Of a DNA stretch of 64,000 bases, positions 1 to 60,100 are shown in pieces. Every line of letters starts with the position of its first letter. Positions within the stretch are counted from its first letter, which is position 1. Origin of the DNA: Styela clava (taxonomy: Eukaryota); the NCBI RefSeq assembly GCF_964204865.1, contig NC_135252.1:5332001-5396000 (forward strand). The letters run 5' to 3'. The position numbers were made by a program, and so were the translations under genes. The notes under the pieces were generated by a model. It was not told the origin of the DNA, made no database searches, and saw only the letters and a list, made by a program, of their open reading frames with translations.

Positions 1-29
1 ATTTTTTACAATCACTTTTGCATTCATAG

Positions 30-945
30 CTTTATACAAGGCCAAAGAAGATTTAATTCGGACCGCTGACGGAGACGAAAAAGGTAAATATATTAATACA
101 ATCAAAGACACCTGAAATGAATATATATATTTTTAAGTCGTCAATTAATTTACACACCAAGCGACGAAAAGGCCAACTGATTCAAACTTTTACTTTTTTA
201 GACGTGATACTACAGCAACAAGCCAAAGTCATTGTGGACGAAGGTGATTATATTGTATGTCAGATATAATAGTTCAGAATTCCAAGTCCCAGGGTTGGGC
301 AAAGTTTTTCTTTGCAAAGGCTGTATTCGGAAAATATTCCTTGCAAAGGGTCGAATTTAATAATGGATGACACTGTTGAACTGCAGAGGAAAAAAACCTT
401 AATATTATTGTAACAATTCATAGATATTTTGAGTAAAGTTTAAAAATAAATCGAAATTGTGTAGTTGCGAGAAAAAACGTTCTCCAAAAGCATGAGCCAC
501 ACAGAATATTTTAGTGTTCAAATGCGACCCGTCGGCATATTTTAACCATCCCCGACCTAAGTAGTAAGGTTAGCAGCTTTGGTACTTCTACACGACTCAA
601 TTGATTTACCAACAGATCTATGTCACTAAAAGTTCAAAAACAATAAAATTGATATAATAGAAGTAAATTTATTTTAGTAACGGGAATGATTTTTGTCTTA
701 GCAAGGCCTTACACTCACTGACATTTTTTTTTCTGCTCACAGCAATTTACGTGGCCATGAACATTCTCATGAAAGACCCTGTTGTGAAGCAGTTAGGTAT
801 GTTCACTTAAGATTTACATTAATTCAATGAATTTGATTTAAAAGATTTGACTGAAGTCGCCATATCCCTAAAAGTCATTATCCTCATTATATTAAAAGAT
901 ATTCAATCCCTTTATATTTTTTCAGATATTGGAGATGGCAAATGA
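30..945 (+). CDS. 3' part (last 4 exons) of an upstream tandem copy of the small AKAP-like gene; 5' part lies outside the window
   Basis: AG/GT-bounded exons 30-83, 202-243, 743-796, 926-945 splice in frame: (A)LYKAKEDLIRTADGDEK-DVILQQQAKVIVDE-AIYVAMNILMKDPVVKQL-DIGDGK*. AATAAA at 980-985. Near-identical to exons 8-11 of the copy at 2066-5999. Confidence 0.8.
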
Positions 946-1958
946 ATGGGCGTATTTTATTGTTTATTTATTTTCTATTAATAAAATTTACAAAATAAAT
1001 TTACTCTGGTATTATCAACGAATTGTACGTTACGTGAGAAAGAATCCAACATTGAATTGTATTATTACTTAAACTTAGATATATCAAAGATTTTTGACGG
1101 ATGTAGTTCTGAGTTTATGATCGATTGTAGTACTCAATATCGATATTTCACGCAAAAAGTTGGCGAACCACTGATCTAATACATGACTCCAAAATGTCAA
1201 ATAAAACGTGAATTGTGCGGCTGTCATCTAATGCCTGAAAAAGAACAGGTATGCTGATATTCCAAGAAAGGGTTCGCGCGGACCCACATATTGGTTGCAT
1301 GGCTACGATGATTAAAATATTAGTGCTTGTAAATGTAACACAGGTGAGAAAAGAAATAGAATCCAAATCTATATGGGTGCAAATATTTGCGTAGCTTAAA
1401 ATGTTCGCGGGTGCAAAGGTAGCGTGGGTGAAAATGAACGTAGATGCGAATTTCTGTGATTGTTAACGTTCGTGGGCACAAATCATCAGAGGTTCACGCG
1501 AAAACTTCCAAGTGTACCATACGGTACTTGTATGGCGGTTAAGATGTCGCGTATTTCTATTTTCAATATCCTATACAAGGGGAAAGGCGTGCTGACTGAA
1601 AAGTACATGCTGATCATGTGTTGCCTGTAGCTGTAACCTGTGATAATGCTCCCAACGCATCGCTTATTCTCCTCAGAACTTTCTTGAGCGGGCAATCATT
1701 TTTTAGGTGTTACACAGTAAAATTAAACATTGATCGCACTAATGTTTAGTATGAAATGTTTGAAATAAATACTTTTGTTGATATTCTTGGCAATATCATT
1801 TCCAATTGCTAATTCATCGACTTTATATTATTGATTAATTTGGTGCCAGCTTGCCGAGAATTCCAGCTGATTGTTTCATGACTCAGAATTGGGCTACTTA
1901 ACGGGGAGAAAGTTAAGTTTACCTGATCTAAAAGATTCCAAATGGAGGGTTTTACTTA

Positions 1959-2021
1959 TGACGTCATAATATACATTTGAATTGTATAAATATCATAATT
2001 AAATTGAAGTTCAAATTCAGT
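1959..2021 (+). promoter_or_regulatory. Putative core promoter: CRE palindrome, TATA box and Inr-like motif
   Basis: TGACGTCA 1959-1966, TATAAA 1985-1990, TCAGT 2017-2021, ATG at 2066. Order and spacing resemble a Pol II TATA promoter. Confidence 0.5.
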
Positions 2022-2065
2022 ATTTTGTTGAGGAAGTCGTTTCAAACGTCAAACCTTTATCAAAA

Positions 2066-5000
2066 ATGGATAACAATTCTGAAACAAGAGGAGAGAATAA
2101 ACGAGGCGGCAAGGTAGGTTGTTACTCGAATAGGATAGGTGACAAATAGGCGTTACACCTGATCAAGTTCACTACTTTGGAACAATAGTTTCCAAACTTT
2201 CTTCAAGTGACCCAAATTTTGTAAAAAAAATGGAGTTCGTAAAATCTCGCGATCCAACGTTATGTTCAAATACTAAACGACATGCAGTGCTTTTATGATG
2301 GCAGAATTTATTTACTACTTAAAAAAATAATCTTTCTTATTTAACAGTTTTCCTTATTATTTATTTCAATATTAATTATTGTTTGTCATGAGCGATTTGT
2401 TGAAACCGTGGCGTGGCTTTACTTGAGAAAAATAGATATTTCACAGGTTTTAGGCTGCAAAACTTCAATACCAAGTACAAATTAAATATACTAGAAATGA
2501 AAACCAATAACTTTTGGGTTTTTGTTCAAAGAATTTTCCGGCAACCAAGATTTGAATCGCGACCCATAGGTTGGGAATCACTGCTTTAAAAGATCAAAAT
2601 TGATGATTCATATTTTAATTTTGTATTGAAACAATATAAATAATAATTTTAGACTTTTTAATTATATTACGCAATTAGAAATACTCATCAAGCTGGTGTA
2701 ATTACCGAATATACAATATATATATTTATACGTGATTTTATTGAATAGCCTAATTAACTTTATTTATGTGAAATACATAAATTTAAACTACGTCCAACGC
2801 AGCTAGTACGCAAATAAATTATATTTATCCACATTACAGAAATGGAGGAATTTCAAAGGCTTTGTGAAGATCTTCTTTTGTTTGGCATGCATTTTTCCGA
2901 AAGTAAGTTTGTTTTTACGAGGTATGAATAGGTACCTATTGAGCTTTATTGATTTATAAACAAAGAAAACTACATTAAACATATAGCAATGTTAATTGCC
3001 TTCAAGTAAGACTGATGTTCTCTAATTGAATATATATACATTCACTTAGAAATCTAAAACAAGAAGACGCGGAGATGAATCAGTTGGTAAGAAAATTACT
3101 GCTAGTATTTAGAAGTTATATTATCGTCAATCAATATTACAAAACTTGGAAAATGGACGTAGTATTTTATTAGAAAATGAATAACCCAAGCATTCATTTG
3201 TTTTGGAAATGTGTTTGTTAATTCCCAAGTATTATATATATATATATTTTTGGCAGGGGTAAACAATATTATTATAAATAAATATATGTACAATCACTCA
3301 AATATCAATTTATGAAACAATCAGAGTTAATAATTACAAATATTTGTGTTGTTTTTCAATATATATAAATATAAAAGTTAATATTTTTTATTCGTTTGTA
3401 TGTGTGATATGAAAGTATATGGCGATTTTAACAATTTAGGTTTTTGTGCCATGCAATTTTTTCGGCATTACTTTTTTAATTTTATTTAACTACAGATTGT
3501 GCAACCTTGACTGAGGAACATTTCCGTGAAAACGTCGAAAAAGAGATCGCAAAATGTGAGTGTGAAGTATAATTAAATGGTTTCTAAAAAGCGTCGTGTT
3601 GACAACCCAAAATATCAAAATAGAATATTTCGAACAAGTGCCGTAAAGATGTAATGATAACCTAATTGTTTGAAAAAAGGGGACATTCCTATTTCTACCG
3701 TGATCTCACGTATGATTGTCGGTTAGTATGTGGAGTGAATCGCGTAGAAATTATATTTTTTTTCTTTAAAAACCTCAATGTTTACGCCCAAGCTTTAGGT
3801 GTAGGCTCAGAGATGACATAAATGAATGAAGTCATTTCGCACAAAAATCTATTCTACTTCTCTTCAATTAAAAGCAAAGAATATACGTCGTAACAATGTT
3901 TATGTATCCTGTGGTAATTGTTTAAAATGAAAAAAAAAATGTTTATTATATAACCAGGTACGTTGAAGACTGTTGTGGTGGATCCAAAGATTGAGGATGA
4001 GAAATCAGTTCACAGCATTGGTAATGATAATACATTATACGAAATATATGTTCTTATGTTTAATTCAGGCACTTTTACATGTAGTAACCATAAATGAATA
4101 TGATACTTACGAAAAATGACATTAAAAAAAATATTGCCCATGTTTCGAATTTTGTTATATTAATTACAGTTATGCTCATTTAACTAAATTTATTATTTAA
4201 AATACCGTAATATAACAATTATTTTTAACTCGATTGCTCAAGAAAGAATGTTTTTAACCTTTGTCATGACGGTCACTCGGTCAGTAACAAACAAAATACG
4301 AAAGACTTTCTAATAGAAAATATTGAAATTAATGAAAGCAAGTGTCTATAAATATTGAAACTGTGTTTTCTGTATATTAGAATCAGTTGCGAAGCCACCA
4401 GCAGGTCCAGTATCAAAAATGCTCCAGGGAGGAGGTTTGATAATAACATTTTTAACGAAATAGAAAATAATTGTAAAACGGAAAACTTGAGCAGTTCATC
4501 TTAGATTCTCATCATTACATAAAAATCCACCAATGTTAGTAATGTCGATTTTGTTGATTGGTTTTTGGGTCTAATACGCTTTATTTCGACAAGATTGTTA
4601 CAAATTTTTCTGATACATTCTAAAATTAATTTCAGGTGATTTTCTTGTGGACCTTGAAGCCCAGAATTTAGTACAAGCTGGTAAGTTTTCAAATCAATAT
4701 GCACATTCTGTTTTTCATTATATTATATATTGCAATGTTGAATGTTAGTTTCTCACTTAGCGGCTCAAGAATTTGCAACGAGCAAGATGTTGGAAACGTA
4801 TAATCTGCAGTATTTATCTAACAAGAAAGTAATGCTAAGAAATTAAATAAAGGTAACGGGCTGTACCAAATGCAACATTAAGACATGTTTGTGAATTATA
4901 AAACCAGCACAAGTTGAAGTGAAATATCAAGAAAAGGCTTGGAATAGCGACTTTTCATTACCCCTATATCAATTTTGCAAAACGATTCTTAGGTCCATTT

Positions 5001-5999
5001 CTGTTTAATGATTTAGTGCCAAAAATTGGGACAACTATTTTTTACAATCACTTTTGCATTCATAGCTTTATACAAGGCAAAAGAAGATTTAACTCGGACC
5101 GCTGACGGCGACGGAAAAGGTAAATATATTAATACAATCAAAGACATCTGAAATGAATATATATTTTTTAAGACGTTAATTAATTTAAAACTGTCTTACA
5201 CACCAAGTGACGAAAAGGCCAACTACTTCGAACTATTACTTTTTTTAGACGTGATACTACAGCAACAAGCCAAAGTCATTGTGGACGAAGGTGATTATAT
5301 TGCATGTTAGATATAGTAGTTCAGAATTCCAAGTCACAAGGTTGGGCAAAGTTTTTCTTAGCAAGGGCCGCATTCGGAAAATATTTCTTGCAAAGGGTCG
5401 AATTTAATAATGGATGACATTGTTGAACTGGAGAGGAAAAAAACCGAATATTATTGTAACAATTCATAGTTTAGATAATTTGAATAGTGTTTGAAAATAA
5501 ATCGAAATTGTGTAGTTGTGAGAAAGAACGTTCTCCAAAAGCATGAGCCACACAGAATACTTTAGCGTGCCACATGCGACCCGTCGGCAGTATTTTCCCC
5601 ATCCCCAACCTGAGTAGTGAGGTTAGCAGCCTTGGTACTTCTTCACGAAACAATTGATTTGCCAACAGATCTATGTCACTAAAAGTTCAAACACAATAAA
5701 ATTGATAAAATAGAAGTAAATATATTTTTGTAACGAGAATAATTCTTGCCTTAGTAAGTCCTACACTCACTGACATTTCTTTTTCTGCTCACAGCAATTT
5801 ACGTGGCCATGAACATTCTCATGAAAGACCCTGTTGTGAAGCAGTCAGGTATGTTCACCTAAGATTTACATTAATTCAATGGATCGGATTTCAAAAATTT
5901 GATTGAAGTCACCAATTTTCCAAAAGTCCTTATCCTTATTATATAATATATTAAATGATAATCCCTTTATATTTTTCAGATATTGGAGATGACAGATGA
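2066..5999 (+). CDS. 11-exon micro-exon gene, 179 aa, small AKAP-like protein with two predicted PKA-R-binding helices
   Basis: Exons 2066-2113, 2840-2902, 3050-3086, 3496-3555, 3958-4020, 4381-4434, 4636-4680, 5066-5119, 5249-5290, 5795-5848, 5980-5999 all have GT-AG boundaries and total 540 nt with no internal stop: MDNNSETRGENKRGGKKWRNFKGFVKIFFCLACIFPKKSKTRRRGDESVDCATLTEEHFRENVEKEIAKCTLKTVVVDPKIEDEKSVHSIESVAKPPAGPVSKMLQGGGDFLVDLEAQNLVQAALYKAKEDLTRTADGDGKDVILQQQAKVIVDEAIYVAMNILMKDPVVKQSDIGDDR*. AATAAA 6034-6039. The gene model is strong; the AKAP function is inferred from motifs. Confidence 0.75.
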
Positions 6000-6961
6000 A
6001 TGGGCGTACTTTATTGTTTATTTATTTTGTATTAATAAAATTTACAAATAAAATCAACTCTGATATTATCAACGAATTGTACGTTACGTGAGGAGGAATC
6101 AAACATTGAATTGCATTAATACTTAAACTTAGGTATATTGAAGATTTTTTGATGGATGCAGTTCTGATTTATGACCGATCGTAGCACTTAATATCGATAG
6201 TCTTTCGCAAAATTTCCAGCTTCTATTTCAAGTCATGGGAACATTTTTATATTCTATGGGAACACTTTACGTGTTTTTAGGTAACGAGTTGCAATAATTT
6301 CACAGTTTGTCATATTTTGCTACGCTGCTATTTTATGATGAAAATAAAAATAAATATTTCTGTGTTTGTGTTTGTTATAGGGTTGGCCCAAAATGCGTTA
6401 ATAGCTAAACGTGGCTATGGAGAAAATGCCGCTCAACTCGAGGTTGACAATAATTTCCTAATAGCCTTTCGACTACTATATATATGCTTGTTTTTCGGTT
6501 AAAGGAAAAATGAATCACTCTTTAGGTTGAAAAATAAATTCTCTACCATTTTAATCAGGCAAAATAGCTTTTTCATAGATTTTTGGGAAAACGAAATTTA
6601 TCCCCTGGTTTTGCCCTACCCCCAATAACATTTCTCTATGTGTCAAATTAAGGTTCAATCCATACTCAACGGTTAGCCAAGCGTTAACTATTTCCCAAAA
6701 TTACTGCACAAATTGACAGAAATAAAATAAATGTAACACAGTTTCAACATGCATATTACAAAATGTACATTTTGGACTTTGTGTTTTATTTATTCTATAT
6801 AGCAGGTCATTAGTGGGCACTGCCCGCAAAGCAAATTTGACATGGAATGAACGAAGTCTGAATCCAATGGGGCAATAAAAAAACTTTTTTATACAATGTC
6901 AACCAATTATCTAAGTTCCTGCACAATGCTTTTGACAATTTTTCTATTTTCTCAGTTGGCG

Positions 6962-7400
6962 ACACGAGGTGCGGCTAAAATGAAACGTGACTGACGTCAC
7001 AGATTGCGCAACACGATTAACCATCGGTAATCAATGCAGTGTGGCGTAATATGTGTTCTTTGTTTAACAGCTGTTTTGACACAATATCGCAATTATTTTT
7101 GCTTTTCAGGATCCATAAGTGAATGTGATAAATTTCTTGTTGAAAAAAAAATGCTGTGCGAGGTCTGATTGAGTTTTTTGGCGATAGGGGGTTCAATTGC
7201 AGAATGACGATTGAGCAAAGAATTAACATTAAATTTTGTGTCAAACTTGGAAAAATGCATGTCAACTCGGCATGCATTCAATCGTTGAGCTTTCTGCTCC
7301 TCAGTCAACTCAATAGCCTTTGGCATCATTTTGGCACACACCTTTCGCATTCCCAAAGTGTCAAGCAAAATGGTGCGGACCGTTTCTTTGTATATATATA
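6962..7400. mobile_element. Mariner transposon remnant with an internally inverted segment
   Basis: Plus strand from 7204: MTIEQRINIKFCVKLGK (mariner N-terminal HTH). Minus strand ~7400-7260: KETVRTILLDTLGMRKVCAKMMPK..LTEEQKAQRLNACR (degenerate WVP linker region). TIR-like CACGAGGTGCGGCTAAAA near 6963. Confidence 0.7.
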
Positions 7401-10400
7401 TCGAGGGGTTTTATCAATGCTTTTAATATCTTCGATCTGACTAAAATGTGAAATACTTGTAAGGTTTTTAATCACAAGATTTTTAATATACCAACGACTA
7501 ACATACCGGTCAAAACGCACAATATTCGGCAAGTTGATTTTTAAACGTTGGCAGCAGCGAAACTTTCATTTATTACGTAATAATATACCGTACTCTATAT
7601 TGCACACCCAGACTCGAATACCGTATGTGTACATCGTATTTTGCACATGTTGGCCACAATGATTTATTCTTCCTGCTTTAAAACACACACGCAGTGCCTG
7701 CAATCCTGCATGAAACTGGTTCAAAGCAATTTTTAGGTTATTTTATAAAATTCACTTAACATGAAACGCGATCGACTACTCAAGAAGTTACGATCAACCT
7801 GTTGGCCACCCCTAGTATATAGTCTCGTCTAGAGCCTACCACTAGAACGGCGACTTTCAAAAAGTCGTAACGTAATCTTTTTGCTATATATATATACGAT
7901 AATTTTTGCAAATCATTTGTTACAAGGTCCACGAACTGTCCTAATCCCTCCCCTGCTTAGATCAGCAGTATTAATGAATTCAAATAGTTGTGATTTATGT
8001 AAATAAAGATCCCCGCAATTTTATTCGACAGGATTCAGATGGAAGACGATCACCTGACTACATGCTGGCTCTTTTTATGTACAAATATATGAATGATACA
8101 TTCATTCATTGCATGAATTACTTAAGTGTTGCATGATTTAATTTCAATTTAAGTAAAATAATTCTACAACATAATGAGTTAGGATACTCCATGCTTGTTA
8201 AGCAAGGGAAAGTTGACAACATACCCACAGTGGCGTAACTACCCATTGGATCTTGTGGACAAATCCATCCAAAACGTTTTAAATGAACCAAGGCAGTCAC
8301 ATTAAACGACCTAATTTACCACTGAAGCCAAAAAATTACACAAGATATACGTCTAAACCAGGTGTTTTATGGCTCGTGGCCCCCTTCCAGCGCCTTTTTG
8401 CACTCGCGGTCTTCGTGTTCGCCATTCCAAAAAACGAAACGTGTTGGATTGTATTATGTGTTTACGACCTATTATGGAATGCAAAAGCAAACCACAGACA
8501 AGAAAATAAACGCTCTCCAGTATACGATCAAAGGTAAGCTTGCGCTTAGGACTGTCTGACGAGGTTTCTCGTATTAGGCGCAGTCTTTTTTTATAGCTAG
8601 ACGAATGTCAACATCAAGACGGTTTATAAATTTTGTTTTTGTGGTATAAAAATCGGCTTTTGCTCGGACAGAAACCCGAACTTAGTCAATGTGCGTTCCT
8701 GTCGAATCTAACTCGCTTGACAGCAAAGAAACCGATGCCAACGTGTTTCCCGGGGGTGATTTTTGTCGCGGTATGTTGGTCGTTGGTTGGACGTAATTAT
8801 TTATTGCTCATTACATACCGACAGTGCCAGCATTAATCACATCATTGATACCATGATCACATTCTCTCGCATCTCAATTTACTTTGGTAAAGTCAACGGA
8901 ACTGTTGTTGTTGTTGGTACATCTGTCTGTGCTTGGAGGCCCAGGAACGCAGCTATCCATGTGTTCGTTCAAAACGGAACTGTAGTTCAATATTCGTAAT
9001 TGCGTCTATAATACGCTAGCGAAGGTTATCTCGCAGTCGAGTGGAATTGTCATTCTGTAGGTTAGACCGGACGGCCTACCGGCGAACTATTTTCGTTGGT
9101 AGATTTCAAATTCCATTATGATCAAACAATTCACGCACAAGAAAGTGAATACACCCTGTGATCGCAAATAATCCTATTCAGGTAATGAAACTAACGAAGT
9201 CGCTATATAATAAATTATTAGCCCTGTGTCGTGGTCCCCCTCGTACTGCTTCGTTGTCCCTGTAGGGAGCCCCCGGATGAGAACCACTGCACTAGTACAA
9301 TCAAGTGATTTTACATTTAAAAATGACGCTACAGCGCTGGACGTCCTGCAGTGGTTAAGCAAACATCGTTTATGTGAATCAACATCATATTTATTCATGA
9401 ATCTCAAGCTTTCCTCACTGTTGCCGTTTCTTTCACAAGCTGCGAATAACGAAGTCAACACCCGAGTTGATAAAGTTTTACTTGAGATCGACCATGGGAG
9501 AAAGCAGGTTGTCTGTGCCAGCAATACTGCTCATTGAAAGTGATTTAGTCGAGACATTATTTTTTGACGATATAATTTTTGAATTTGCTTCAATGAAACT
9601 TAGACCTTGAATTTGGAACCGATAGAATTTACTATTCACTGCTTTATTCTGTTGTGTAGAATTTTATTCAGCTTTTACGACGGTGTTGAGGGGGCGTCAT
9701 TTCGCATCATACATTTATAATAGCCAAACAGCTACGAAACTTTTCATCGAATACAAATTGCTAGCGTAAGTGAAAATATAATTATTTTATCATTTACAAC
9801 TGTTAAAATGCTCCCTTCGAATGCTGAGATTTCCAGCGCTGGTGGCTGGCCTTCGAAACGAAACGTCTGCAGAAAACGAGAATAATCTTTTTTAGACATT
9901 GAGAGCGATCTTTGCACACTTACAAAGTTACAACAAACCAATTCATGGTTACATTAATTCACGTTATTTTAATAAACCCTCGGTCTGTTTTTCAAGCTGT
10001 GCACTGTATATATCGCTCACTGCTAAGTGAGAAGGTGATAAGAACTTATGGTTTTGATAACATATTATCAGCGTATCAGCATTGGCGAAAAGAGTGGTAT
10101 CGGCAGTTGGCACACCTCTAGTGCAAATACCATGCGTGGCTTCAAATAAAGCTTAGCTGGTTGCGCAACTCTGAAGAGGAGAGAGGCGATATATTACAGT
10201 CACACTGCTAATTATCCGATTTCTGCTGGTGGCCTAAAGTCTGAACTAAAGCATAATGCAGTGATATGTGTGGATTTAGGCTGATATGTCGAGCTGATAG
10301 AGAGTAATTGTCGAAATAACTGTCTCTAAAATCTGTGCCGAAATGAAATACCCAAAGACCGTGTACACACTGACATGCAAATACTTTTATTCACTTTTAC

Positions 10401-10737: not shown

Positions 10738-13700
10738 TCAAGCATTTCCTTTCAATGTTGCCATTCCAGCTCTCATCATTTCATCTACCAAGAGTAGATT
10801 AGACGCAATAACTTGACTATAAAAAGAAAAGAGTTCATAAAATATATGAGAAAGACCCAAGAGTGCTATACAGCCAACTACTGTGCCAACTTTTATATTT
10901 AGGCTCACACAAGATTAACACAGTAGATGTTCGGACAGGCATAAAAATCAATTTTGGGCACTCCAAAAGTATGTGTGCCATCGTGTCAACATGGAGGTAA
11001 CTACTTTTTTCGCCTATTTTACATCAAGTTGTGTGAAAGGACTGAAACCTATGGGTAGGGGATATATTCACTTGGCTAACACAGACAGTCTCCGAACTTG
11101 TAGTAGAACTAAAAGGAGGAAAATCAGAATAAAATTATGGCCTAACCGTTACCTGGTACACATACTAAGGGAGTACCTAATTTTGAAGCAAAACAAAACA
11201 GTAGTCAACAAGAAAGAATAATATGCTAGCTATTGCATTCATAGAGCCTGCTTGTTTGTAATATATTACATATATTGGCATAAAGAGTGCGATACTCTAA
11301 GAGAATAATATTTTGCAAGTTGAAATACACAATATAACATGTACTTTTACAAGTACTTGTGGGACTTCATAAATTGTAGACTATTGGCTTAAGATATCAA
11401 GAGAGTTATGAAATGAAACAGGCAAACAGCACTTACCAGGAATTGAGTAATTGCTTCATGACGTTGTAGTTGTCAACGATTCCAGCATCAATAGGCGCTA
11501 AAACCTCTCCTGAATAAGGATTACAATTGAGCATGGTAGAAAAACCTTTCTTCATTATATAGTCAAATACACAAAATTTTACCGGTTTGAAGATCTATTC
11601 CCACAGCTACAGTCCCACCATTCGAGTTCAATTCATGTTGCAATTTTACAATGGTTTCTTGAGGATCCAATCCTGAGTTCTGAGCCAAAACTTTCGGGAT
11701 AACGAGGAGAGCATCAGCAAAAGCCTGATAAAAAACGAGCATATCATATTGCATAAAATTGGATAAAAAAAGATTAATGATTCTAGCCCGAATTATTACC
11801 AAGTACACTAATTCAATTTCTATTCCACTCTCTACCGTCTGGTACAGAAACAAAATTTAAATTAGGTAGGATAGATGTCATGATGGTTTGCCAATGTTAT
11901 GAAGGTTTTGACAGCTGATGTCTTATGTTGGTAAGCTATATTTTAAATGCTCTCCTTTTTTCACAAGTGATTCTTTAACGGCAGACAACTAAGTTCGGAT
12001 TTTATATTTTTGGTAAAAATCAAATTTGTTGTTTCTGTCTATTAGCGAGAGCCATGGGTAACGTTTCACCGGATTCAAGCGCGAGTTCCCATTGTAGCAA
12101 AGAGCTGATTGATATTCAAGCGGCACCAGATACCAGAACAGTTAAATTCGTTCGCTGCACATTACACATTATTAGAATTTTTGCATAGAACAGAGGAGAA
12201 AGAGCCATAGTTTACTATATATGATTAACAATAACAAGATCAACTTTACTCCATATTCTTAGGTTCTGCCATACTTACTTGAACTCCAAGTTGGGCTCTT
12301 CCTTTCACAGTAGGTTTGAACTTCATAAGTGCTGCATGGGCCGCTATCTCAAACGCACCTGCACCCGCAACGAAACAGCCTGTAACAAACAAATGCATCA
12401 TTTTACTCCAAAAATATTCCACTTGAAAAAATGATGAATAAATAAGTTTGGTCAAGATTCTATTCAGAATATTTGAAGTCGACGACTCGAAACTCGAATA
12501 ATTCGGTAGTCGACCAGAACATTGTAGTCAAAAATACTGCATAACTCAAATGAAAATTCGGAGCTCGAACACCCGATACGAGCGTGCGCTGAGTGCGAGG
12601 ATGCCATCCAAACCGTGCACATCGGCTCCCTCTCGACCATTCAACAAGTATCATTTCAAGTCAGATTGTTATTGGGATATCACATGTTAAAATCACATGT
12701 ATGTGATTCAGTGAGAGCAACTATTGAGTTAAGAAAAAATAACGTGAATTACTTTACAAGAATGGTGTTCGAGTGTCTGATCTCGTCTAACCAAGTGGCA
12801 TGGCAAAGCCTATCGATTTTAAAAAATAGGAAAATGATAAAGAAAACTAATGATGCGCAGGGAATGGCAGCAATTATTGTTGTTTAGGTACACGTTTTAT
12901 TACAATTTTGGGTATTTTGAAATGCATAAGATCGTATTTTTGGAACTCGAGCACCAATCTCAAACGAGTTATGCTCGACTACCGAGGTATCACTGTAGCT
13001 TTATTTATTTTATTCCAACAATCTCTAGATCCAAATAACCGGAAGAAAATGCATGAAGTGAAACTCCCAAGTCCCCATCTGTATATTGAAATTACTTGGA
13101 CAATATCATAAGTATAATCACCATCATCTATAGCATTCTTCACAGCTCTTAAACCATCTCTCACAGCATCTTTGATTTGTGTTATTGTGTGACTGTTAGG
13201 TCCTCGAACGAGTATAGTAACACTTTGCGGATTGGCGCATTTTTCAACAAATGTATATTTGCTTTCACCCTGGAATAATGAAAGAATCAAAAACAATGCC
13301 TGAAAAAATATGTTAATCAAATATTTTTTACTGCAAAGTTTGATGTCAATGCCGAATGTGAGTGTGTATATAGCGTATGCATCATCAATTTAATAAAATT
13401 AGTTTTCTGGTAGAAAGATATTTTTCATGTACTGGTTCATGCCGATTGCGAGTACATCTCGAGTGATGAGTATAAAATTAAAATCCAACACCCCTAATTA
13501 AAGAAAAAAAAGCCAGATTGACTGCATAGTAGTGGCTGTTATGGAATAAATAAATCAAAAATTCTAGATAGAGACATATTGTCCAAAAACTGTGCTTACC
13601 AGAACATGCTCATACACAAGACCAGCTTTACCGAGGCATTCTGGTGTTAAATCATCTACAGAATTCATCGCAATTCCCCCACAAGCTAAGACAAGTCGTT

Positions 13701-52271: not shown

Positions 52272-52688
52272 ATGGAAGAAGCATTAAACAAGTTCGAAAC
52301 TATGGTTGGATCGGCAGAGAAGAAATTGGACAATATTGAAAAGAAAATTGATGCTGAGTTTTCTAAACATTTAAATTGTGAAGATGATGATGACGATGAT
52401 GCCGAGAATAAATTATCTCTTTTGAAAAAATTAGAAGAAGTCAAAGCAGAATATTCAACCTTGTGTAAAGAAGCGGCAGAAGTGAGCACAGCGCAAAGAC
52501 AGATGGCTGAAGCATTTCAACAAGAACTTTTAGCTCAAGTTAAGCAGTTACAAATGCTCCAAGATCGTGGTTTTACTGGATCTGATAGAAGATTAGATGG
52601 TGACGCAGAAGCTGCTGTAAATACTTTTGTTCAAAAATCTGATGGACAAGATAGTAGTTTAATGCAAAGTGCAAATGAAACACGATGA
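52272..52688 (+). CDS. SKA2: Spindle and kinetochore-associated protein 2-like, intronless CDS, 138 aa
   Basis: MEEALNKFETMVGSAEKKLDNIEKKIDAEF..NKLSLLKKLEEVKAEYSTL parallels SKA2 ([48 protein letters not shown], from memory). Coiled-coil character and size fit. Confidence 0.75.
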   Translation: MEEALNKFETMVGSAEKKLDNIEKKIDAEFSKHLNCEDDDDDDAENKLSLLKKLEEVKAEYSTLCKEAAEVSTAQRQMAEAFQQELLAQVKQLQMLQDRGFTGSDRRLDGDAEAAVNTFVQKSDGQDSSLMQSANETR

Positions 52689-57100: not shown

Positions 57101-60100
57101 ACGAAATATTTTCGCATTTCATCAGTATTTCAAAGTGTATTTCGGCTCTGTTTTTTAACCCCCAACTTGCACTTTTACTTAAATACTGGTGTAGTAGATG
57201 CGCATTCTCATCCAAACATATCTTTCTATAATTATTTCTAACTTGTATCTTTCATTGCAGACGCCAGGAGAAGGAGAACACAAGATCACTGAATTCATAA
57301 GACATGAACGCATGCAATCTCACTATGATCCAAATACAAGACATTGTTTATATGGACTTGACGCTGATCTGATGATGTTAGGGTTGTGTTCACATGAACC
57401 TCATTTTTCACTACTCAGGTGATGAAAACATTTTTCATACTATTGCTAATATTGTTATCAATAATATTTTGTTTACCAATTGTTATGGGAGTATCGATTG
57501 ATATTGATGCATTGTTTGTGTTGTTATTCATCATGATTTTGGTTTTTTAATCAGCTGATTTATTACTAGTTTGACTGTATTGGACATCGAAGGTTAAAAG
57601 ATATCAGGGTCAAACCTTAGGCCATCAGCCTCACTCAAAATATAATAAATTGGATAGTCGATGCTGAACAAGAAAAATGTTTGAAAAAAATATCAACCTT
57701 TTACATAGCAGGGGATGTTACTATGGCACCTTTTCGAAGAAAATGTGTTATTATATCACCTGAACAAATTAAAATTTCTTTGATATTTCTGCGTTCCCAT
57801 GTTCATTAATTATAAACCTCTCTTTGATTAATATGTGCTAATTTTGTTTACCTACTTTACATCAAGTTGTGTAAATGGACGGAAGCCTGTGGGTGGGGGT
57901 ATATTCACCTGGCTAACACAGACAGTCCCTGAACTTGCAAATTGCATTACGCAACCTTGTTTAACTAAATATTTGATGAGGTTTAAACCAGTTATGTACT
58001 GCATGAATTACTGAAAGAGTCTCGTTATTATCACATCACTGAATAATATGCCTTTACATTACATTACAATTTTCATTGCAGGGAAGAAGTTCGTTTCACA
58101 GGTAAAAAGAATAAAAATGCAAGAACTCCTAAACCAGAAGAAACAACTTTTCATTTATTGCACTTGTCACTGATGAGAGAATATATTGATCATGAGTTTG
58201 AAATTTTAAAGGTAAGTTGCTGCTATTGTAGAAACGTTATAACATTGTATACACTGAAATCTATTTTCTGAATCAATACCTTATTAAATTGATAGGTAAA
58301 TCATCTCCAGTGTACAATTTTGTTCCAACATCATTTTAAATATAGTACAAAGGGTAACAACATTGAAAAAACCGTTATTCTAAATTATCTACTAGAAATA
58401 ATTAACAATGCTTTATGCAGTCGCTTTATGCAGCTTTTTTTGGTTATCTTTTATTGTTATCTACAATGCTTGTTGTTATTTCAAATCCAATACAATTTTT
58501 TTTTTTTGAACCTGTCTCCAAAGAATTCAGATTGAGAGCAGTACACATTAAAATTCGGGATGGATAGAAGAAAATTTTTCAAATACTCAAATTACAAATT
58601 TTTTTTATTTTTAACTAAATATTTCTTTATAAAAATAAATTGCAGAGAAAAAGTTTGACATGTCAATTTTGTAACCGGGCTTTACCTTTGTGGTTTATGT
58701 CTTTCTATGACCGTTTTAGTTTATTCATCACAAATAGGTTAGCTCTGATTCATTCATGATATCTATCATCAACTACATCAAATGGCTCATCATTTTAAAC
58801 ACACTACCATTTTCATCTTCTGCAAAAATGACTCAGTTATTGAATGAAATTTTGTTCTGTTTCATATGAGTTTGATTTTGATAGAAGATCAAATTTTTAG
58901 TGCTTTATAAACTCTTTCTTTTTGGGATTACTAAAGATCGTGAATTTAAGTGGACCTTCAAATGCCATTACTTTATGAAGCTGAAACATACCTTTCACGA
59001 TCTTTGCATTTTTACCATTTGTGTTTTCTGAAAAATCTGATGTGCACCATTATCCATATTAGAGCAATTAGATTAGGCAATGCTACATGGACTATATAAT
59101 ATAAATGTTTAGAACAGTGATTCTCGCCCCTTTTTAGAATTTGCCAAGTCTCACGCCCTGCCTCAATACTATCTAACAATAAGCTACAAATAGCAGATAG
59201 AAAAGTATATTTTACTCAAAAAACACGTTGAAAATACTTGGATGAAATAAATGAAAACTTTTGAAAATTGAATATCCAAAATAAGGCCAATTCTAACAAA
59301 TCTTCTTATTTTTAATTGGCTTCACGCCCCCACAAAAATTGTCTACGGCCCACTGTTTGACAACCACTGGACTAGAACATAAAATATCCACAGCACACTT
59401 CGACAACCTGTAGTATGAAATTTAAGTTTGTCTTTTTGCAATACCTTCCTTCGACTTTTATTATGTTTTTCCTCTGACAAAAACTAGAAAATATTTTCTA
59501 TTGATACGCGGATTATGCTCCTTTTTACTAATGTTTTAAATCAAACTGAATGCAGGTCATCTACATTTTTTATCATGCATTGACCTTTATTAAATATTAT
59601 TTATTTCAGAAATCAATTCCTTTTAAATATGATCTTGAAGCTGTCATAGATGACTGGGTTCTTATGGGATTTCTTGTTGGAAACGATTTTATACCTCATT
59701 TACCTCATCTTCATATTGCACATAATGCCTTACCAATGTTATACAAAACGTACAAGGAAGTTTTGCCTACTCTAGATGGATATTTAAATGAGGGTGGAGT
59801 TGTCAATTTAGCGAGGTTTGGAAAGTATCTGGAGACTTTAGCTAAGGTATGCATTGTTTTATTTATTATCAAGCTATATTTATAGATGTGAATGTATATA
59901 AGTCAATTTGAATTATATAAATGCTATGCATTAAATCACTGGCTCCCAAAGTTTCCGAGCCGTGGGCTAAAATTAGCGGCCGTGACTCATATATAATCCT
60001 AATACTGGTACGTGTAATTAAGATAGGCCTACCGGTATAATTAAATTGTTACGAATATACACATGCTCAAACTTTGATAATGATCTAACGATCAGCAGTA

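Follow-up and report, generated by a model that had tools for sequence, protein, structure and literature searches.

We describe a gene of 11 very short exons at positions 2066-5999 of a 64,000-nucleotide (nt) stretch of Styela clava DNA (NCBI RefSeq assembly GCF_964204865.1, contig NC_135252.1, positions 5,332,001 to 5,396,000; G000:C3:5332001-5396000 in our numbering), hereafter the window. The gene is almost certainly real and protein-coding. Its product, 179 amino acids (aa) in length, contains two predicted amphipathic helices of the kind through which A-kinase anchoring proteins (AKAPs) bind the regulatory (R) subunits of protein kinase A (PKA), preceded by a basic N-terminal segment that may associate with membranes. 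Of the mechanisms considered for such a product, the best supported is a membrane-associated anchor that would dock R subunits through its two helices, and judging from the sequence we give it about an even chance of being correct.

Scripted joining of the 11 exons on the + strand (48, 63, 37, 60, 63, 54, 45, 54, 42, 54 and 20 nt in order) yields a single 540-nt frame of 179 codons plus a TGA stop. This exactly reproduces the frame put forward in the initial annotation, which had claimed one 179-aa frame from 11 exons of 20-63 coding nt, and the transcripts agree with it. All ten introns are bounded by GT..AG, with a pyrimidine-rich run preceding the AG in most. The start codon lies at 2066 in the context caaaaATGg; exon 1 (2066..2113) encodes aa 1-16 and is joined in transcripts from 2113 to 2840. 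Exon 2 (2840..2902, aa 17-37) encodes the pattern W18-x-x-F-x-x-F-V25 (2843-2866) and, likewise transcript-backed, a hydrophobic run with Cys30 and Cys33 (2879-2890) and the onset of a polybasic run. The remainder of the latter, K37-R44 (3050-3070), falls in exon 3 (3050..3086), whose 37 nt shift the phase from 0 to 1. Exons 4-10 are phase 1-1 throughout and have lengths divisible by three. Exon 4 (3496..3555) encodes part of an acidic middle region and is followed by exon 5 (3958..4020) and by exon 6 (4381..4434), which encodes a Pro- and Gly-rich linker with GGG at its end. The first half of helix 1 is encoded by exon 7 (4636..4680; motif from 4659, exon end within the Ala124 codon), and the second half, together with a Gly/Asp linker, by exon 8 (5066..5119; motif to 5079). 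Helix 2 is divided in the same manner between exon 9 (5249..5290; motif from 5269, exon end within the Ala156 codon) and exon 10 (5795..5848; motif to 5808), the latter also encoding the Pro168 that terminates the helix. Exon 11 (5980..5999) supplies the last 20 nt including the stop codon.

With 100 kb of upstream sequence added and the exons mapped onto it, the window gene was found to be the last unit of a ~31-kb tandem array (C3:5306946-5338199). The array consists of six complete ~5.0-kb units, each with its 20 splice sites and 179-codon frame intact, and one 1.25-kb partial unit at the far edge that contains exons 8-11 only; these no longer join in frame, and the exon 11 acceptor has been lost. 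The last unit (U6) occupies window positions 1146..6199 (+), comprising a 920-bp upstream spacer, the gene and 200 bp past the stop, and is preceded at 1..1145 (+) by the 3' part of unit U5 (exons 8-11 and 3' untranslated region (UTR)), which is 88-95% identical to 5037-6199. Units 1, 3 and 5 are mutually 98-99% alike, as are units 2 and 4, which indicates growth of the array in blocks of two units. In the window's edge unit, divergence is greatest across the 3' 40% (92-93%), and there the unit has Gly140 and Ser173 in common with a paralog on contig C9. Both the divergence and the shared residues are as expected from homogenisation of the inner units.

This C9 paralog (C9:14174372-14179281; locus L012, G000:C9) is an intact single copy with the same 11 exons and 179 aa. 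Its exon 1 (2872-2919 of that locus) begins Met-Gly, as opposed to Met-Asp in the C3 copies. The flank downstream of the gene is not shared with C9, and the C9 copy is therefore a unit-sized duplicate; a large segmental duplication as its origin was rejected on the same ground. A degenerate copy is located on C18 (locus L013, G000:C18:16570501-16579500, minus strand). It keeps pieces resembling exons 3, 4, 5, 8, 9, 10 and 11; exons 1, 2, 6 and 7 were not found in it. Exon 4 of this copy has suffered a frame-breaking 5-nt deletion and the donor of exon 10 is displaced 15 nt downstream, yet its helix 2 is still motif-perfect (A-K-D-I-V-D-K-A-I-Y-V-A). Membership of an array, with copies on two other contigs, is an addition to the initial annotation, which saw one gene.

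Transcription was assessed using read contigs over window positions 1400-6400 from three RNA-like runs belonging to three studies (X1, X9 and X11) and from a DNA run (X2). The RNA label of the former was a guess, but these runs do contain RNA, since introns are spliced in their contigs. Junction support for all ten introns had been proposed as a check of the gene model: 10/10 introns are seen as joints in X1 and in X9, and 7/10 in X11 (introns 4, 5 and 10 not being among them), as against 0/10 in X2, whose contigs continue through the introns. Nine of the ten joints correspond to GT..AG at the predicted bases. The intron-5 joint is placed 3 nt leftward as TT..AT, the transcript reading CATAG-AATCAG where the window reads CATTG-AATCAG. 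This shift is due to a synonymous T4019A variant (ATT to ATA, Ile) in exon 5 at a canonical splice site, and an A at the equivalent of 4019 is fixed in the C9 paralog. The RNA-like contigs start at 2039-2043 and extend to at least 6092, placing at least this much 3'UTR after exon 11. Some exon 4 contigs show 0 differences from the window and others 5, which suggests that the C3 and C9 loci are both expressed. A retrocopy as the source of the joints was rejected, as a genome search found no intronless copy. One further X1 contig of 1235 nt, corresponding to window positions 918-2113, contains the spliced exons 10-11 and 3'UTR of the preceding unit, the 920-bp spacer and then exon 1 of the window unit. 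This suggests read-through transcription of the array, possibly polycistronic, with an artefact of the assembly graph as the alternative.

Comparison of the C3 units with the C9 paralog gave a synonymous divergence (dS) of ~0.17-0.20 and a nonsynonymous divergence (dN) of ~0.05, with a dN/dS ratio (omega) of ~0.27 (0.24-0.31). Identity between C3 and C9 is 92.8% in exons versus 82.6% in alignable intron columns, and intron lengths differ widely. The low omega and the higher identity of exons over introns indicate that the frame is under purifying selection. Only 28 of the 179 positions vary among the seven intact copies (the six C3 units and the C9 paralog), and 12 of these fall within the first 37 residues. 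Conservation is heaviest on the helices: no position varies in aa 100-132 or aa 149-172, the stretches that hold them. It could be argued that short open pieces chain into this frame by chance, or that the transcript is non-coding. Micro-exons are generally easy to chain in AT-rich DNA, but nothing further speaks for such an explanation, and the exact splicing of introns in three runs, the retention of the frame and all 20 splice sites in seven copies, the omega value and the better conservation of exons than introns led us to reject it; its probability is practically negligible.

Helix 1 is predicted to span approximately aa 110-132 and helix 2 aa 142-167, separated by a Gly/Asp-rich linker of ten residues. 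Neither contains Pro or Gly internally; Gly and Pro occur at the helix ends, with Pro168 closing helix 2. The initial annotation had quoted two segments (aa 116-128 and aa 148-160) as each fitting the PKA R-subunit docking consensus, and this is borne out: residues 117-128 and 149-160 match A-x-x-[LI]-V-x-x-A-[LI]-x-x-A, the strict form of the pattern. In 200,000 composition-preserving shuffles of the protein, the strict motif occurred once at a frequency of 1.1e-4 and twice at a frequency of 0. At generic amino-acid frequencies, ~10 chance hits to the strict motif are expected per 10-million-residue proteome, and a single match alone would thus prove little. A broader pattern from the AKAP literature, which permits a range of hydrophobic residues at the same positions, matches at the two helix sites only; at least one match was found in 18% of shuffles and at least two in 2.7%. 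Over the 12 residues of the pattern, helix 2 shares 8 with AKAP-IS, an optimised binder of RII.

AKAP helices have been described as 18-mers with a hydrophobic face at positions 2, 5, 6, 9, 10, 13, 14 and 17 (PMC12083921). The pattern found here maps to positions 6, 9, 10, 13, 14 and 17 of this 18-mer, with Val or Leu at position 2. The amphipathic helix of 14-18 residues with a small aliphatic face by which AKAPs are recognised (PMC12083921) is thus found twice at pattern level, at aa 117-128 and aa 149-160. RI-selective anchors carry Phe/Tyr-Ala at helix positions 1-2 (PMC12083921), where helix 1 has Leu-Val and helix 2 Ile-Leu. As neither has an aromatic-Ala start, both helices look RII-type, and RII-type or dual binding would be expected.

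A phase-1 intron splits each helix within the codon for Ala, the eighth residue of the 12-residue pattern, and the two modules are encoded by exon pairs of 45+54 nt and 42+54 nt. This shared intron position indicates duplication of an exon pair. The best local alignment of the modules is ungapped over 25 residues, and its register is precisely the one that the introns define. It scores 31, compared with 18.4 +/- 3.8 in shuffles, 0.9% of which reach 31. Together these features point to duplication of a two-exon module as the origin of the two helices. All six strict-motif positions are identical or conservatively replaced between the modules, while most other positions differ; such conservation at the pattern positions is what selection on a docking face predicts.

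The N-terminal part of the protein has a different character. Residues 1-16 are hydrophilic and begin MDNN, so the C3 protein has no Gly2. The strongly basic segment aa 12-44 contains W18-R-N-F21-K-G-F24-V25, a 12-residue hydrophobic run within which Cys30 and Cys33 lie, Pro36 and K-K-S-K-T-R-R-R. The hydrophobic run is too short and too charged for a transmembrane helix or a classical signal peptide. The basic, hydrophobic, Cys-bearing segment is conserved in the seven copies, with the W, F, F and V of the W18 pattern and both Cys invariant, and may as a sequence pattern represent a targeting element. Residues 45-109 are net acidic, with two Pro-containing stretches and G-G-G at the end. W18-x-x-F-x-x-F-V25 also fits, as a pattern match only, the 1-4-7-8 hydrophobic calmodulin motif counted from Trp, with the basic K37-R44 downstream. 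In the calmodulin site of AKAP79, hydrophobic residues spaced 1-4-7-8 and counted from Trp79 precede roughly ten residues rich in basic side chains (PMC5698441); the main polybasic run here comes after the hydrophobic, Cys-bearing stretch and not directly after the W18 pattern.

Potential partners for the helices are encoded in the same genome, where four exons score above the cut-off for the Pfam RIIa family. An RII-type docking/dimerisation (D/D) exon at C8:9804145 is followed on the same strand by exons for cyclic nucleotide monophosphate (cNMP) binding, and among solved relatives it matches RIIalpha D/D domains best; it also weakly matches SP17, ropporin-like and RSP7/11 chains. An RI-type D/D exon at C18:14184344 matches RIbeta/RIalpha and is followed by a cNMP exon. 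For the remaining two (C4:22054239 and C1:15273503), which are RIIa-only, no exon for cNMP binding is listed within 1 Mb, and they may encode proteins of the ropporin or SP17 type. A further criterion for an AKAP is that its organism also has cognate R subunits with D/D domains; here both RI and RII types are found.

On the preferred reading, the product would consist of three parts: an N-terminus for membrane association, an acidic linker containing Pro and Gly, and two amphipathic helices of ~23-26 residues with a Gly/Asp loop between them. The N-terminal segment would combine a basic run, the Trp-anchored 1-4-7-8 pattern, a hydrophobic stretch with two possibly palmitoylated Cys and the polybasic run, and might hold the protein at the inner face of the membrane. 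Each helix would then offer a ridge of Ala, Leu/Ile and Val to the four-helix D/D domain of a PKA R-subunit dimer, such that one molecule could tether up to two holoenzymes, in the manner of vertebrate dual-helix anchors. Membrane targeting, lipidation, calmodulin sensitivity and R-subunit binding are all predicted from these patterns. A more specific version would have the gene encode an ascidian miniature AKAP79-type scaffold, in which a calmodulin-sensitive 1-4-7-8 motif and a palmitoyl/polybasic anchor are combined with two high-affinity RII helices, built independently by micro-exon module duplication and amplified to seven copies; this is a tentative proposal that we rate as rather unlikely.

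Several points weigh against a PKA anchor. The two motif matches are not independent, as they share descent by internal duplication, and the motif is a post hoc definition taken from the initial annotation. Its weight comes instead from its having been kept after duplication, its invariance in seven copies and the concentration of inter-module conservation on the putative docking face. No match to a PxIxIT-like, LxVP or RRxS/T motif exists in the 179 aa, and so no calcineurin or RRxS/T site. Pfam gave no family for exon 2 or exon 5 (exon 2: E up to 10, hmmscan), and its WSK profile (PF03832), in a six-frame search of the genome, gave one weak match elsewhere and none at this locus. Surveys moreover place most AKAPs, the dual-helix ones included, at the base of the vertebrates (PMC12083921). 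Finally, with a short loop between them, the two neighbouring amphipathic helices could pack against one another.

This last possibility defines one alternative, in which the hydrophobic faces are buried in a helical hairpin within one molecule or in the four-helix bundle of a dimer; the product would then have nothing to do with PKA and be a small structural or adaptor protein associated with membranes. The arrangement of helix, 10-residue Gly/Asp loop and helix, the conservation of both hydrophobic faces and the failure to find either an AKAP profile (exons 2 and 5; WSK at the locus) or an accessory site for enzyme docking (179 aa) are in line with a hairpin, but the conserved face is small, with Ala at 3/6 motif positions, which is typical of a D/D docking ridge and would make a poorer self-packing core. 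Helix 2 is also very close to the optimised RII-binding consensus (AKAP-IS), which we count against a hairpin, and overall we regard this explanation as unlikely. Slightly more doubtful is a role in docking non-kinase RIIa or DPY-30-type proteins (ropporin, SP17, CABYR, radial-spoke-type), for example in sperm or cilia. The two RIIa exons that lack a listed cNMP-binding exon within 1 Mb (C4:22054239 and C1:15273503) and the weak matches of the RII-type exon to SP17, ropporin-like and RSP7/11 chains would supply suitable partners, and a structural function in some abundant cell type would go well with the high gene dosage. Such helices usually bind RII too, however, and the basic, Cys-bearing N-terminus indicates membrane rather than axoneme.

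We also considered a precursor of secreted amphipathic peptides, comparable to the styelid antimicrobial peptides, in which case the hydrophobic run would serve as signal sequence and processing would take place at RRR. A small, lineage-restricted and tandemly amplified gene encoding amphipathic helices would fit this description. Yet the hydrophobic run extends over ~12 residues only, includes Lys and lies between two strongly positive stretches, and the helices are net acidic or neutral, not cationic. They are moreover the most conserved part of the protein, whereas host-defence peptides usually diversify. A peptide precursor is thus very improbable.

AKAPs are defined by function and are mutually non-homologous. 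Comparison with individual anchors was therefore made at the level of architecture. AKAP79/150 (AKAP5) and gravin (AKAP12) have basic membrane-targeting regions, palmitoylatable Cys and an RII-type amphipathic helix near the C-terminus, all of which have putative counterparts in the predicted product, and AKAP79 shares with it, at pattern level only, the Trp-anchored 1-4-7-8 pattern followed by basic residues that forms its calmodulin site (PMC5698441). Unlike the present 179-aa product with two helices, these proteins are at least 427 aa long and contain one; there is no detectable sequence homology, the WSK profile is unmatched and no calcineurin site is present. The short forms of AKAP7 (alpha/beta; AKAP15/18) resemble the proposed anchor in being very small, lipid-anchored membrane AKAPs that combine a short N-terminal targeting segment with a docking helix. 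The RI/RII-docking domain of AKAP7 (PF10470), however, resides in one 3'-terminal exon, first seen in lamprey and reported as absent from Ciona (PMC3508976), whereas both helices here are intron-split and followed by one or more further exons. The MDNN start, in addition, offers no Gly2 for myristoylation, and there are two helices.

Two R-subunit helices per polypeptide, with a proposed hold on two holoenzymes, are known from SKIP (SPHKAP) and AKAP220 (AKAP11) (PMC12083921). These proteins are very large and reportedly of vertebrate origin, in contrast to the present product, whose helices appear to derive from a module of two exons that was duplicated. The aromatic-Ala start that selects RI, found in the helices of SKIP and in one of AKAP220, is also missing from both helices here. 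In the same survey, 14/23 AKAPs are placed at the vertebrate base, including the dual-helix SKIP and AKAP220, and AKAP79 at the tetrapods (PMC12083921). smAKAP (C2orf88), like the proposed anchor, is a small (~100 aa) membrane-tethered protein, but its RI-selective Tyr/Phe-Ala start, its myristoylated and palmitoylated MGC N-terminus and its confinement to vertebrates have no parallel here. The likeness to known anchors is one of pattern, and on this basis we do not assign the gene to AKAP5/12 or AKAP7.

Exon-wise homology searches are nearly powerless at 6-21 aa, and the Pfam search of single exons was made with exons 2 and 5, the only ones of at least 20 aa; no Pfam AKAP profile matched the exons examined. 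The open frame containing exon 2 (window:2825-2917) returned no orthologue from 1.84 billion representatives, which for so short a query is a weak blank. Its sole match, P0002, was rejected as an unrelated repeat protein that matches a 'CLAC' stretch five times. A protein atlas search with exon 2 gave no usable match, an Rfam search of the window gave none, and a literature search for an ascidian or Ciona AKAP of this kind found none. The statement in the initial annotation that no orthologue could be recognised is consistent with the blank exon-2 search, which is weak evidence.

If the product is indeed a PKA anchor, the sister group of the vertebrates would have solved membrane PKA anchoring on its own, and membrane-proximal and dual-helix anchoring would, contrary to the surveys, not be a vertebrate invention. 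The protein would then also offer a compact, natural two-site anchor with which to address how helix number and spacing shape local cAMP signalling. The gene shows cleanly how a motif for protein interaction can be duplicated together with the two exons that encode it, and illustrates that micro-exon genes can escape annotation based on open reading frames.

The surroundings of the gene contain several repeats. Intron 1 harbours a dispersed repeat (window 2188-2465) that recurs in the genome over 40 times, at ~70% identity and spread across many contigs, and contigs of the DNA run break at its edges. Just downstream of the array lie a young repeat (window 6964-7395), with dozens of copies at 96-98% that each have a nearby inverted partner piece, and a second repeat family (window 8271-9705) that is 83-90% identical to its copies. 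Pfam matches to a CCT/TCP-1 chaperonin subunit (12979-13320, -), SKA2 (52272-52688, +) and an XRN-type exonuclease (59550-59885, +) show ordinary gene-dense surroundings. Exons of the Wnt family are found at window 24121-25898 (-), the large exon being 86% identical to Styela clava Wnt-4-like.

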